DNA from: Perna viridis | Taxonomy: Eukaryota | NCBI GenBank assembly: GCA_037379345.1 | Contig: CM074512.1 | Span: 50,985,597-51,049,596, forward strand | Length of the DNA stretch: 64,000 nt | Direction: 5' to 3' | Shown here: positions 8,858 through 31,119 of the stretch, piece after piece | Layout of the letters: each line of letters opens with the position of its first letter | Position numbering within the stretch: position 1 is the stretch's first letter | Made by a program: the position numbers and the translations under genes | The notes under the pieces: model-generated | What the model was told of the DNA's origin: nothing | The model's input: only the letters and a program-made list of their open reading frames with translations | Databases searched by the model: none

Positions 8858-9187
8858 ATGACCAAATTTTGATTGATGAGGGTAAAAATATTTTGTTTTT
8901 TACACATTTGATGAAATTAGCATATTTAAAAAGTGCAACATTACAATAAATTAACTAAGACAAAGATATGCAACCAAAGTTTGATTTGTTTACTAATGAG
9001 AAATTTTGTATCTATTAGGAAGTGAAGCTTAATTTTATATGAAGATTTTAATACAAATTAGGAGACAATAAATTGATATGATTTATGATTTTGACGTGAA
9101 AGTTTGGAAGTGGAACATAATTTTCTATAAAAGTCGTGTTATCAAAGCTGATAAGACAGAGAACCTCAGCATCTATCCCAGGGAAAG
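8858..9187 (+). promoter_or_regulatory. Promoter and non-coding exon 1 of cluster gene A
   Basis: TATAAAA at 9126, short exon ending AAG|gtatgt at 9187; upstream blocks (gaccaaattttgat; tttgatttgtttactaat; tacaaattaggaga) shared with paralogs B and C. Confidence 0.65.
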
Positions 9188-11100
9188 GTATGTATTATTT
9201 TATAACGACTGTCAGTAAAGGATGTAGTGATGATAAGTTGTTAATGTCAAGAGGATTTTTTTTATTATTATTAATGGAATTACATAAAAATTGGGCCGTA
9301 TTAAAGAGGTAATTGTCTAGAGCTTCCACTTACTTTAGTTATGTTTATGCAATATGTTAATTTCCCAAAGTATTTTTTAACAAACAAAAACAAAAAAAAA
9401 ATGCATCATACAAACAACGGACTTAGTACTGTTAATAATTACGCAGATTTAAACCGATTGACTGTACAGATCAGGGGGGAATCATTGATGGCAGATGTTG
9501 CGCACCCCCTTACAATTGGGGGAAATGTGTATAAAACTATGATTTTACAAAAATTCTACCTCTAAAAACGTTCTATGCGCCTTTAATTCTATTAACTCTC
9601 CCCAGTCCTACAGTTGTAATACGGGTCGATGTTTGTCATATACTATATTAATTGGTTCTTGTTATTCGTATCAATACTCATTTCACATGAAAGGCTCTGA
9701 TTTGGAATGTCCACAAAAAGGGTTAAAAGATGAAGGCAAAATCTAAATTTTCTCAATGTACGAGTCGCTTTACAGATAACATGAACGTTCGTTATTCTAA
9801 TTTCAATAGTAGTATCCAAAGGTTGGGAGAAAACATCTTTAAGTTAAGGACTTCAAAATAGTTTACAATCATGTCTTAAAAATAACACATACATACATAT
9901 ACGTACATAATTCGAAAGAAATCACAGAGATTCTTGTTAAGTCATAGCAAAAGATAATAATAACTTTCTTTTTGGAGTATCCCCCAAAATTGAAAAATCT
10001 TTATTCTATGATCTTTAAAAGCATTGCTTTACTTTAGTTTTCCTGTAAATAAAACATAATCCCTGGATTTACAGGCATTATTCATACATTCAAGGAAGAT
10101 CAAAAGATGCTCAACTAAAGATTCAAACATATTCAAGATAAGAAGCATTACATGAGGAAGTTAATTATAATTATTACTTTTAATGTAGTCTTGTGAAAAA
10201 AACTAAACAAAATACTGATGAGTAAACATATACAAGTGTTAGAAGGTCTCAAAGTTCACAATGCATGCTTCCTGCAAGTAAGTTGCAATCCTTATAGAAG
10301 TTAATTTTGAAAAGAATGTCAATCAATATATCAAGATATCAAGAGGTTCCTGAGAACAACTCAATAATTGTATACGAAGGCCTATCAATCCAAAAATACA
10401 ATATCTGAGACATACACTCCTACATATTTTTTGCATTGTGTATAAGGTAGGAGCGCAGAACTTAGAACAAAATTGATAGATTTAACCAACGTGTGCATAA
10501 GAACAGGGTATGTTGTATCTTTGTATTGTTTAAGCCTTTCTGAGAAATCTTAAAAAAGATTATAGAAATATTGATTCTTTAATGACTGAGAACTTACAAA
10601 GTAAAGATATAATCTATTTTCTATGCGCAATACTACTTCCACTGATTGAATTTTATCGCAAGCTCATTTTCTTTATATCAAAAATGTGCTATTGTCGAAG
10701 TGACCCTCCTTAATTCTAACCAATAATTAGATGTTCTCTTTCAAATAAACTTTTACTGATGGTGATTTAGCCGAACCCGTATACATTAAGAAAATCAAAT
10801 AAATAACTGGCAAAAAAACGAATTCGTGATCATTTTACGCCTATCTTATTTTTTTACATCATTCAACTTAATATGTGATTCCTGACAGAACACATTTGTA
10901 GAAATTATTGAATTCTAATATGAAAAAAGTTTGATAGATAAAATGTGTATGATGTAGCTCTTATGATTCTATATTAGTTTTAGTTCAAGTAATTTTGAAA
11001 TTTTGCTTAGCATTCAAACAATGGTTACTTTTGGTTTTCTTTACATTTGGTAAGTGAATTCTTAGTTACACGCTTTTGTCTTGCAGACATTGACACCATC

Positions 11101-29063: not shown

Positions 29064-30376
29064 ATTGAATATAACATTTCACGCTCTATTCAGGAGTTAG
29101 CTGGACCAGGAGGAGATCCTATGGCTGGTGGACCGGGAAGTGCCTATGGTTACGTAAGTAATTTGTAGTTTTATCAAAGCTACAAAATGTGTTTTTTCTT
29201 TATCCATGAATCTGTTTTATAACTTGTTCGAATAATATTTAGAGTAGAGACCCCTGATCATGCACTTTTCGGAAGTAAACAGTGTGATAGTTATTGTTCA
29301 CAGTGTGGTACGAATTTGCCAGAGAACAATTAAGACTAAAATTATTTTAAATGTCAGTTTCTTACAAAATTGTCTTCTCGAGATTTTTCCTCTAAAATGA
29401 TTGTGTTTTAATAGTTTTCGACTACATGTAGTGCCTGTTTAGTTTTCAAAACTTTTTGTCAACTTAGTTTTGAATTATCAGGTATGATGCTAAATGTATT
29501 CCGGTTAAAACTATAATACTATGTTATTTTGTAGCAAAAACAACCATACGGAAAACCAAAAACTTACGGTAAATCATATGGGAAACCTTATGCTAAACCA
29601 TACGCAAAACCACAATATGGAAAACCAAAATATGGAAAACCCCAATATGGAAAGAAGTACGCTAAACCACTGTACGCAAAGGTTTACAAGAAAGTCTATG
29701 CAAAGGTAAGTGCTATAAATAGGTCAGTGAATGTTTAGAAGATAAATATATTTCTACATTACGCATTAATTAATAAGATTAGAGTATACACCTTGGTACA
29801 TCATTCTTAAACAGTTAAAATTTTACAATGATCAGTTGAACTAAGACTGAAGACATAATTTCGAAGTTTGTTTTCTATGAGGCTCAGATTTGTTCATTTG
29901 AATGTTATTTTATATGGAATATTCTATATATCGACTTAATTTTCCATTTCTGGCCATTTACAACAAACCTTATTGATCTCATTAATGGTTTGTTTTTGTA
30001 ATATTTCAGCAAAAAAAGGTAAGTAAATTGCATAACCACGTGACTTATTCAGATAGCAATATAAAAGTAATAGATATTCATAAGTTGGCATTGAGTTTCA
30101 GATTTAATGATAAGAAAATTATTATTATGCATTGATATGACCCTTTATAGAAGTATCATACATGCAAACTAATTCAACTTCAAAAGAACCCTGAAAGTCA
30201 TCAGAAAACCTACCTAAGGATTACAACTTTTTATCAGACAGAAATAGGATTTTCAAAAGGTTCACACCATTTTACTTGACAAAAAACAAGCACTGCAAAA
30301 AATGGCATAATCATACTTTACTTTGTCCGTGGTTTCTAATTACAGTTTTGTTTTGTTTTTCTAGGGAGGATACTAA
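28113..30376 (+). CDS. Cluster gene C: secreted Gly/Pro/Met/Trp acidic + Lys/Tyr/Pro basic diblock protein, ~300 aa; coding exons 28113-28763, 29094-29153, 29535-29705, 30010-30018, 30365-30376
   Basis: Signal MRTLICFAFVFTAVYGA; motif VDIATVITALIDAV; PN|gtatgt; ELAGPGGDPMAGGPGSAYGY; QKQPYGKPKTYGKSYGKPYAKPYAKPQY...VYAK; microexon QKK; GGY*; AATAAA at 30432. Confidence 0.88.
29019..29060. repeat. (TA)21 microsatellite in an intron of gene C
   Basis: Direct inspection. Confidence 0.95.
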
Positions 30377-31119
30377 GATAATAGACTGACAGACGAGGAT
30401 AATCATGTCTAATCCACTACTTAAGTCTTTCAATAAACAATCTTTGTGCAACAGATCATCTTATTCTGTTTTATTTTTTTTTTTATTTTTTTTTGTTTCT
30501 GCATCAGTCACAAAAGTACATAGGTTATACAATAACCTTTACTGCCAATCAATATAAAATTCAGGCACTGCCTGTGGTAGAAATGACTCGCATTGTTGAA
30601 AAACTCATCGAACAGTGTTTTCTTCCGGTCTGCATACACTATCCTTTCTGTATTCAGACCTGCATTTTTTAAAATATTTTTTTAAGAAAACCATACAAAA
30701 TCAACCTAATCAAGAATGAATTCTTGAAAAGTATCAATCATAAATAAACTATCAAAATGTATGTCATACGTACAACAGCAGAAGACAAACTAAATCTGGT
30801 TTTAAAGTAGTCAGTAACTGTTTCGGAATCAGAAATAAAAATGAACTTAGTAGGTTTCGGTTTGGCAAAAAAAATATGAAACATATCGTATTCGTATGAT
30901 TTTGTTTTGTTTTGTTTTGTTTTATTTATTTATTGGTTTGATTGAACATCGTGATGACATATATAAAACAGTGGTACATACATACGTATACTGTTGCAAA
31001 TATCCGAAGTGTCTTTTATATTGAGAGTATCACGTGTTGTATAGGTATCTAAAGACTACATGTAAATAATGCTCAATCCAACATTTACAATAGTAAGTAT
31101 ACTTTCCACAAGTGACAAG

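Follow-up and report, generated by a model that had tools for sequence, protein, structure and literature searches.

What kind of secreted product is encoded by genes of which gene finders can see little more than a single exon? This question is raised by a tandem cluster in a 64,000-nucleotide (nt) stretch of Perna viridis DNA (hereafter the window), which most likely belongs to chromosome 2. Three paralogs lie there on the plus strand and share one layout between 9126 and 30437. They most likely form a lineage-restricted family of secreted, disordered diblock polyampholyte proteins, in which a Gly-rich, mostly acidic block is followed by a basic block of Lys, Tyr and Pro, and the family is undescribed as far as our searches reached. 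We put the chance that its members are self-condensing diblock precursors of a tanned extracellular protein material at roughly one in two.

The layout common to the three paralogs begins with a promoter element, a TATA box, a non-coding exon 1, a signal peptide and a Gly-rich exon ending in PN; towards the 3' end it continues with a Lys/Tyr/Pro exon whose last residues are VY[AS]K, a basic microexon of 9 nt (KRK in gene 1, KKK in gene 2, QKK in gene 3) and an exon that encodes GGY and the stop. All splice borders in the cluster are GT..AG and all coding junctions are in phase 0. These results uphold the sequence-only reading, which had described three same-strand paralogs with Gly-rich, Lys/Tyr, 9-nt and GGY exons at these places and had pointed out that the list of open reading frames (ORFs) reads the Lys/Tyr exon in the wrong frame (ORFs 12688-12945 and 29521-29709). 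Its exon model was right for the exons it listed but lacked one, a Gly/Tyr exon of 54-60 nt between the two blocks, which is present in gene 1 transcripts, has a counterpart in gene 3 and recurs in a relative on contig L007 (see below). The family escapes gene finders: the Gly-rich exon alone is visible, the Lys/Tyr exon has no ATG, and two exons measure 9 and 12 nt. At the nucleotide level the copies show low mutual similarity, and the shared design therefore does not stem from recent copying. The features are listed below; for genes 2 and 3 the placements were made from the sequence, with further grounds named in the line concerned.

8980..8997, plus strand: TTTGATTTGTTTACTAAT, the upstream element of gene 1, at a distance of 129 nt from the TATA box; the exact 18-mer found in gene 2
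9126..9133, plus strand: gene 1 TATA box TATAAAAG; the transcript contig begins about 26 nt downstream
9159..9187, plus strand: gene 1 exon 1, non-coding, 5' end approximate; joint 9187|11087 in the 1437-nt X1 contig
11087..12048, plus strand: gene 1 exon 2, ATG at 11101, signal peptide; contigs from X1, X5 and X6 agree without differences
12305..12361, plus strand: gene 1 exon 3, Gly/Tyr linker DLQSAGGYSGSGYGRTYGY, 57 nt; joints 12048|12305 and 12361|12648 in X1/X5/X6
12648..12941, plus strand: gene 1 exon 4, basic Lys/Tyr/Pro block of 98 amino acids (aa), net charge +30, ends VYAK; seen in contigs
13611..13619, plus strand: gene 1 exon 5, 9-nt microexon (KRK); seen in contigs from X1, X5 and X6
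14305..14385, plus strand: gene 1 exon 6 with GGY, stop and 3' untranslated region, AATAAA at 14361-14366; contigs end at 14374-14385
19797..19814, plus strand: gene 2 upstream element, exact copy of the 18-mer TTTGATTTGTTTACTAAT, from the upstream alignment
19987..20043, plus strand: gene 2 TATA box at 19987-19994; a non-coding exon 1, predicted from its resemblance to genes 1 and 3, stops before the GTATGT donor at 20044
20479..21447, plus strand: gene 2 exon 2, ATG at 20491, signal peptide, poly-Gly/Trp block, helix VDLSTVITALVDAV, gap at 21041-21172
21500..21556, plus strand: gene 2, doubtful equivalent of exon 3, 57 nt with SYHYG at its end; the acceptor is weak and exon 2 stops only 52 nt before it
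22036..22113, plus strand: gene 2 exon 4, short basic block of 26 aa, net charge +10, ends KPKVYKTYKKVYSK
22592..22600, plus strand: gene 2 microexon (KKK), with AG and GT borders
22953..23017, plus strand: gene 2 last exon with GGY and stop, AATAAA at 23012-23017
27747..27764, plus strand: gene 3 upstream element, three mismatches to the 18-mer, from the upstream alignment
27872..27927, plus strand: gene 3 TATA box (27872-27879) and predicted non-coding exon 1; GTTAGT donor at 27928
28104..28763, plus strand: gene 3 exon 2, ATG at 28113, signal peptide, helix VDIATVITALIDAV, ends PN
29094..29153, plus strand: gene 3 exon 3, predicted, 60 nt ELAGPGGDPMAGGPGSAYGY; good acceptor, GTAAGT donor, phase 0, YGY end
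29535..29706, plus strand: gene 3 exon 4, basic Lys/Tyr/Pro block of 57 aa, net charge +17, ends VYAK
30010..30018, plus strand: gene 3 microexon (QKK)
30365..30437, plus strand: gene 3 last exon with GGY and stop, AATAAA at 30432-30437

Transcripts carry the model of gene 1. Four sequencing runs, including X1, X5 and X6, were mapped onto 9100-14400, and this check against RNA left gene 1 fully covered by spliced contigs: all of its junctions, those of the microexon included, were seen in runs X1, X5 and X6 from three studies (9187|11087, 12048|12305, 12361|12648 and 12941|microexon|14305). One 1437-nt contig from X1 spans the gene from exon 1 to the poly(A) region. Between 12941 and 14305, the X1, X5 and X6 contigs hold AAAAGAA plus AG, which is exactly the gene 1 microexon. 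These contigs must be spliced RNA, because the helix motif of the family (see below) occurs just three times in the genome and no processed copy exists. An X5 contig has a loose end at 11085, where its last 16 letters equal the end of exon 1 and the letters further upstream differ from the genome; this may represent an allele or an alternative first exon or start.

Exons account for 68% of the stretch compared; of its words, the six probable-RNA runs contained 43-63% and the DNA runs 75-98%. Word depth over gene 1 rose to about 1760 in run X5; the raw-read RNA run X12 yielded zero reads on any gene 1 exon in 1.56 billion letters, and eleven further runs, guessed to be RNA with this nature unconfirmed, carried almost none of the words of this stretch. 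The high depth in X5, the silent X12 and the near-empty other runs thus point to gene 1 expression that is strong but restricted to a tissue or state.

Intron 5 of gene 1 also contains a dispersed repeat (13702-14232). Its word depth is very high in X12 and in every RNA-like run, it has many loose ends, and it is probably an expressed transposon or short interspersed nuclear element family and not part of gene 1.

The model of gene 2 has to bridge a gap in exon 2 (21041-21172), whose 132 N keep the frame, the number of N being an estimate only. On its left, the ATG and signal peptide fix the flank; on its right, a single frame is open and runs up to PN and a following GT, as it does in the paralogs, and the two flanks align to the stretches that precede and follow the helix in genes 1 and 3. 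The candidate for exon 3 at 21500-21556 is possibly a relic.

Upstream, the alignment of the three regions revealed the same TATA context TTCTATAAAAGT, a similar start region and the 18-mer, which lies 108-173 nt upstream of the TATA boxes and is exact in genes 1 and 2, with three mismatches in gene 3. None of the shuffles of the window reached four matches of the 18-mer. It includes TGTTTAC, which we take to be the core of forkhead sites, and it may drive co-regulation of the three genes. A TATA-like site at 20411 had been a candidate for the gene 2 promoter; given the shared 18-mer at 19797, that site was rejected and the promoter was placed at 19987, with the predicted exon 1 ending at 20043. 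Genome-wide, exact copies of the 18-mer number three, the third of which (L014) looks unrelated, and with one mismatch or fewer there are 24 copies versus 23 for a control, that is, no enrichment. Because it is as frequent as the control, the 18-mer is unusable for finding co-regulated genes.

The encoded proteins start with a hydrophobic N-terminus, modelled as a helix over residues 2-16; a small residue (G) separates it from the mature start. The mature proteins are Cys-free, the only Cys residues sitting in the signal peptides. After the signal peptide comes PY.P..GG and then the Gly-rich block, with 28-47% Gly, 5-14 Trp and no Cys; GGWNEP-like units carry many of the Trp of gene 1, the exon has two Tyr, both adjoining the signal peptide, and a Met content of 6% is reached in gene 3 only. 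In gene 1, the block is acidic and rich in Gly, Trp and Pro (316 aa, net charge -27), contains the helix VDIGTVISALVDAV and ends in PN; in gene 3, it is acidic and rich in Gly, Pro, Met and Trp (217 aa, net charge -14); and in gene 2, the tail behind the gap is acidic and likewise ends in PN. Conserved across these blocks are the motifs PY.P..GGN, GWN.PN..QDPG, VDI.TVI.AL.DAV...K, WQD, GPDMG and W..GP.DPFEG, and since they consist of more than Gly, the likeness reflects real homology rather than common composition. AlphaFold2, run with a three-sequence alignment, gave a mean predicted local distance difference test score (pLDDT) of 47.6, with helices only in the signal peptide and at residues 82-96; by this model, a single helix of about 15 residues interrupts an acidic block that is otherwise predicted to be disordered. 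The conserved helix is hydrophobic (mean hydrophobicity 0.24-0.40, hydrophobic moment 0.25).

Between the blocks, exon 3 of gene 1 contributes 19 aa that are rich in Gly and Tyr and end in YGY. The basic block that follows contains 30-32% Lys and 19-22% Tyr, with 12-14% Pro in genes 1 and 3, and is built of repeat units of 12 and 15 nt ([AG]KPY and AKPQY) over about 110-125 nt (Tandem Repeats Finder). It ends in KPKVYKTY.KKVY[AS]K, and the family tail reads KPKVYKTYKKVY. The charges of the two blocks are -27/+33 in gene 1, -16/+19 in gene 3 and at least -9/+13 in gene 2; in the relative on L007 they are -18/+18, with the microexon lying off the contig. The sizes of the acidic and basic blocks thus co-vary over a threefold range, and their charges nearly cancel. 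Trypsin would find two Lys/Arg among the 316 residues of the gene 1 acidic block, and it would break the basic block, in which about every third residue is a Lys, into tiny fragments; a standard tryptic proteome would therefore hardly see these proteins.

How far does the family extend? In the 723-Mb genome, the helix motif (back-translated, 10 codons) matches exactly three times and its control zero times, and protein searches of the own genome returned the query genes alone. All protein searches were done exon by exon. Against 1.84 billion representative proteins, phmmer found two matches, P0001 and P0002, and when gene 3 exon 2, P0002 and the Lys/Tyr exon of gene 1 served as queries in word-indexed protein searches, the outcome was one of these two or nothing. 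P0001 is the unspliced gene 3 ORF on a 971-nt ENA contig (L008), 99.6% identical to the window. That contig (ENA ERZ13706909, NODE_222796) comes from a metagenome-type assembly and differs from gene 3 by two amino acids, V to G and S to G; it is mussel host DNA in the sample, with allelic variation. P0002, likewise an unspliced ORF, lies on a Logan contig of 1693 nt (L007). This contig contains an acidic block that ends in PN|GT, an exon of 18 codons with SYGY at its end (1199-1252) and a Lys/Tyr exon of 58 codons whose end reads KPKVYKTYKKVYSK. The introns of L007 cannot be aligned to the window and its exons are 75-83% identical, and L007 therefore derives from another species.

Comparison of the acidic blocks gave ratios of non-synonymous to synonymous substitution rates (dN/dS) of 0.21-0.30, with a synonymous rate (dS) above 1, and over the 10 codons of the helix motif the differences between paralogs are mostly synonymous; judged by these substitutions, the acidic block is under purifying selection. 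The claim that no described family matches has held in Pfam, the PDB, the protein searches and the P. viridis omics supplements: the Pfam search with six exon products found no family, and the PDB sequence search found no match. In a protein atlas, the best score was 0.78, for clusters of Gly-rich arthropod 'pro-resilin' and 'keratin-like' proteins; it lies below the level that counts, and the likeness to these clusters is one of composition only.

Other features of the window include a minisatellite between genes 1 and 2 (15059-16568), with about 56 copies of a 27-nt unit and spurious long ORFs on both strands. Two copies of another repeat, at 7734-8069 and 26101-26454 on the minus strand, carry a near-identical ORF of 111-117 aa starting MCPRWWNGVPLACYMLG and are probably an interspersed element. 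Also on the minus strand, 31120-31890 is an ORF with weak ankyrin-repeat matches below Pfam's cut-off, and 39982-40980 holds an ORF in one exon, whose 332 aa include a TIR domain (PF13676, E 2e-27).

What might such proteins do? As precursors of a tanned extracellular material, they would possibly be destined for the byssus, the periostracum or another mantle product. Acidic and basic blocks would pair electrostatically between chains, so that each chain neutralises its neighbours, and cation-pi contacts of Lys with Trp and Tyr, together with the hydrophobic helix, could add cohesion. The protein could then be stored, delivered and secreted as a dense, self-coacervated fluid, and in curing the many Tyr that adjoin Lys would be oxidised (to DOPA or quinone) and cross-linked to Lys. 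A narrower version, which we offer tentatively, is that of a one-component complex coacervate: here the matching block charges would be kept by co-evolving repeat expansions, and the protein would store itself and set into a tanned solid.

Several observations weigh against the tanned-material reading. Coacervation and cross-linking are steps that we purely infer. The left half of the gene 2 Gly-rich exon is not acidic (net charge 0 before the gap, -9 behind it), so that the 'acidic' label of the sequence-only reading applies to genes 1 and 3 and to the right part of gene 2 and fails for its left part. The family motifs were not found in the supplements of the P. viridis foot genome/transcriptome, byssus proteome, foot transcriptome and shell proteome, files that are possibly incomplete. 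Finally, a charge-neutralised precursor layout is also typical of cationic host-defence peptides. Defensin-type and other cationic precursors have such a neutralising arrangement, and mussels make linear cationic peptides rich in Pro and Tyr; the acidic block might thus be a propiece that neutralises a cationic Lys/Tyr/Pro peptide until a convertase releases it. This would suit charges that are balanced and co-vary in four genes, basic blocks that start with KK (gene 1 and the relative) or RR (gene 2) and so offer possible dibasic sites, signal peptides combined with restricted expression, and the nearby TIR-domain gene (39982-40980). We nevertheless consider this main rival unlikely. With its length (57-98 aa in two genes), its short tandem repeats and its 20% Tyr, the basic block looks more like part of an adhesive or structural protein, and a spacer would need far less than an acidic block that extends over 200-316 aa and has several conserved motifs and a helix, all under purifying selection. 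Moreover, gene 3 has no dibasic pair at the junction, and for the conserved KRK-GGY tail we know of no counterpart among amidation or cleavage signals.

The proteins could instead be divergent shell-framework proteins of the shematrin or KRMP kind, secreted by the mantle into shell or periostracum, and their signal peptide, Gly-rich body, Gly/Tyr exon 3 and basic cluster with terminal Tyr (KRK-GGY) would fit that kind; the P. viridis shell proteome even lists an unnamed Gly/Ala-rich protein. This, too, seems quite unlikely to us: the Gly-rich block lacks Tyr, is acidic and contains Trp, the C-terminus is not RnKmY, the order of domains is the reverse of that in KRMP, neither the 1.84 billion representatives nor the word searches gave a sequence match, and the motifs were not found in the shell-proteome supplements. 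Predicted disorder, the lack of a known domain and the weak likeness to arthropod Gly-rich proteins (0.78) would also be consistent with a secreted disordered protein that is never cross-linked and has no structural role, such as a mucus component or lubricant or a carrier of metal ions or pigment, an improbable reading given that short repeats with 30% Lys and 20% Tyr and a strict charge balance are unlike a soluble lubricant. It is very improbable indeed that the genes are non-functional, whether as decaying copies or as low-complexity annotation artefacts. The gap, the very short basic block and the doubtful exon 3 of gene 2 would speak for decay, as would junction support limited to gene 1, but all frames are open, dN/dS is 0.2-0.3, the relative keeps the exon structure, and for gene 1 splicing as modelled in three studies refutes the idea outright.

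Set against known systems, the proteins combine familiar parts in an unfamiliar order. Host-defence precursors share with them a signal peptide and anionic and cationic parts of matching charge; they differ in that here the anionic part runs to 200-316 aa and carries conserved motifs, and the cationic part, up to 98 aa long, consists of Tyr-rich tandem repeats. There is also no clear cleavage site common to all members, a dibasic start of the basic block being present in three of the four (KK, RR and KK versus QK). Abductin consists of decapeptide repeats rich in Gly, Met and Phe, whereas none of the Gly-rich exons here contains a decapeptide array, a separation drawn from the description of abductin only.

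In composition, the basic block resembles the mussel foot protein fp-1 (mfp-1). Mytilid polyphenolic proteins, in which Tyr is converted to DOPA, typically carry basic repeats of Lys, Tyr and Pro; the fp-1 of Mytilus repeats AKPSYPPTYK, and Pvfp-1 of Perna viridis repeats A[TP]PKPWTAWK. The C-terminal block here is likewise basic, Cys-free, rich in Lys, Tyr and Pro and composed of short tandem repeats in a secreted protein. The likeness to the mfp-1 decapeptide that had been proposed from the sequence thus applies to composition and does not extend to the decapeptide repeat: fp-1 is made up of a long decapeptide array, whereas the units here have 4-5 residues in a block of 26-98 aa. In addition, fp-1 is uniformly basic and has no acidic domain, in contrast to the long acidic Gly/Trp block here (-14 to -27 in genes 1 and 3). 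Perna viridis has its own fp-1-type array on another chromosome (C15:21038547-21039320, minus strand, L009-L011), with 15 matches to back-translated PKPWTAWK at spacings of 30, 60 or 90 nt and none for the control. The PKPWTAWK repeat has been shown for Pvfp-1 (PMC7971044). With this array on C15 and not on C2, the cluster is ruled out as the fp-1 locus of Perna viridis.

Shematrins are defined by Gly/Tyr domains and a C-terminal signature of the RKKKY, RRKKY or RRRKY type (PMC3896809). Like shematrins and KRMPs, the proteins described here start with a signal peptide; their body is Gly-rich and of low complexity, exon 3 supplies a Gly/Tyr stretch, and a basic cluster is found together with Tyr at the C-terminus. 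The GnY domains of shematrins, however, contrast with a Gly block that is acidic, bears Trp, is free of Tyr past its start and contains a conserved helix, and the C-terminus K[RK]K-GGY or QKK-GGY has the basic cluster and terminal Tyr of a shematrin but with GG between them. The suggested likeness to shematrins extends to the basic cluster and terminal Tyr and goes no further; neither phmmer (1.84 billion representatives) nor the word searches revealed any similarity to shematrins, whose presence in the libraries was unchecked. In KRMPs, a basic, Lys-rich N-terminus precedes a Gly/Tyr domain, and the order here is reversed, with the acidic Gly block first.

For sandcastle-worm cement and mussel foot proteins, complex coacervates of oppositely charged polyelectrolytes have been proposed, and it is this principle, which joins Gly/Lys/Tyr-rich and acidic polyelectrolytes of opposite charge and cures through DOPA, that we propose for the diblock proteins. 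Wet adhesives and self-assembling coatings are often modelled on what mussels secrete, and the known systems mix several proteins of like or opposite charge on secretion. If the proposal made here is true, a design principle not so far known for molluscan materials would be at work, and the family would offer a test case for selection that keeps repeat expansions in balance. In sandcastle-worm cement, the acidic and basic proteins are separate and the acidity comes from phosphoserine; here, a single chain bears both polyelectrolyte blocks and owes its acidity to Asp and Glu, which, again if true, would make that chain a compact natural template for self-coacervating materials.

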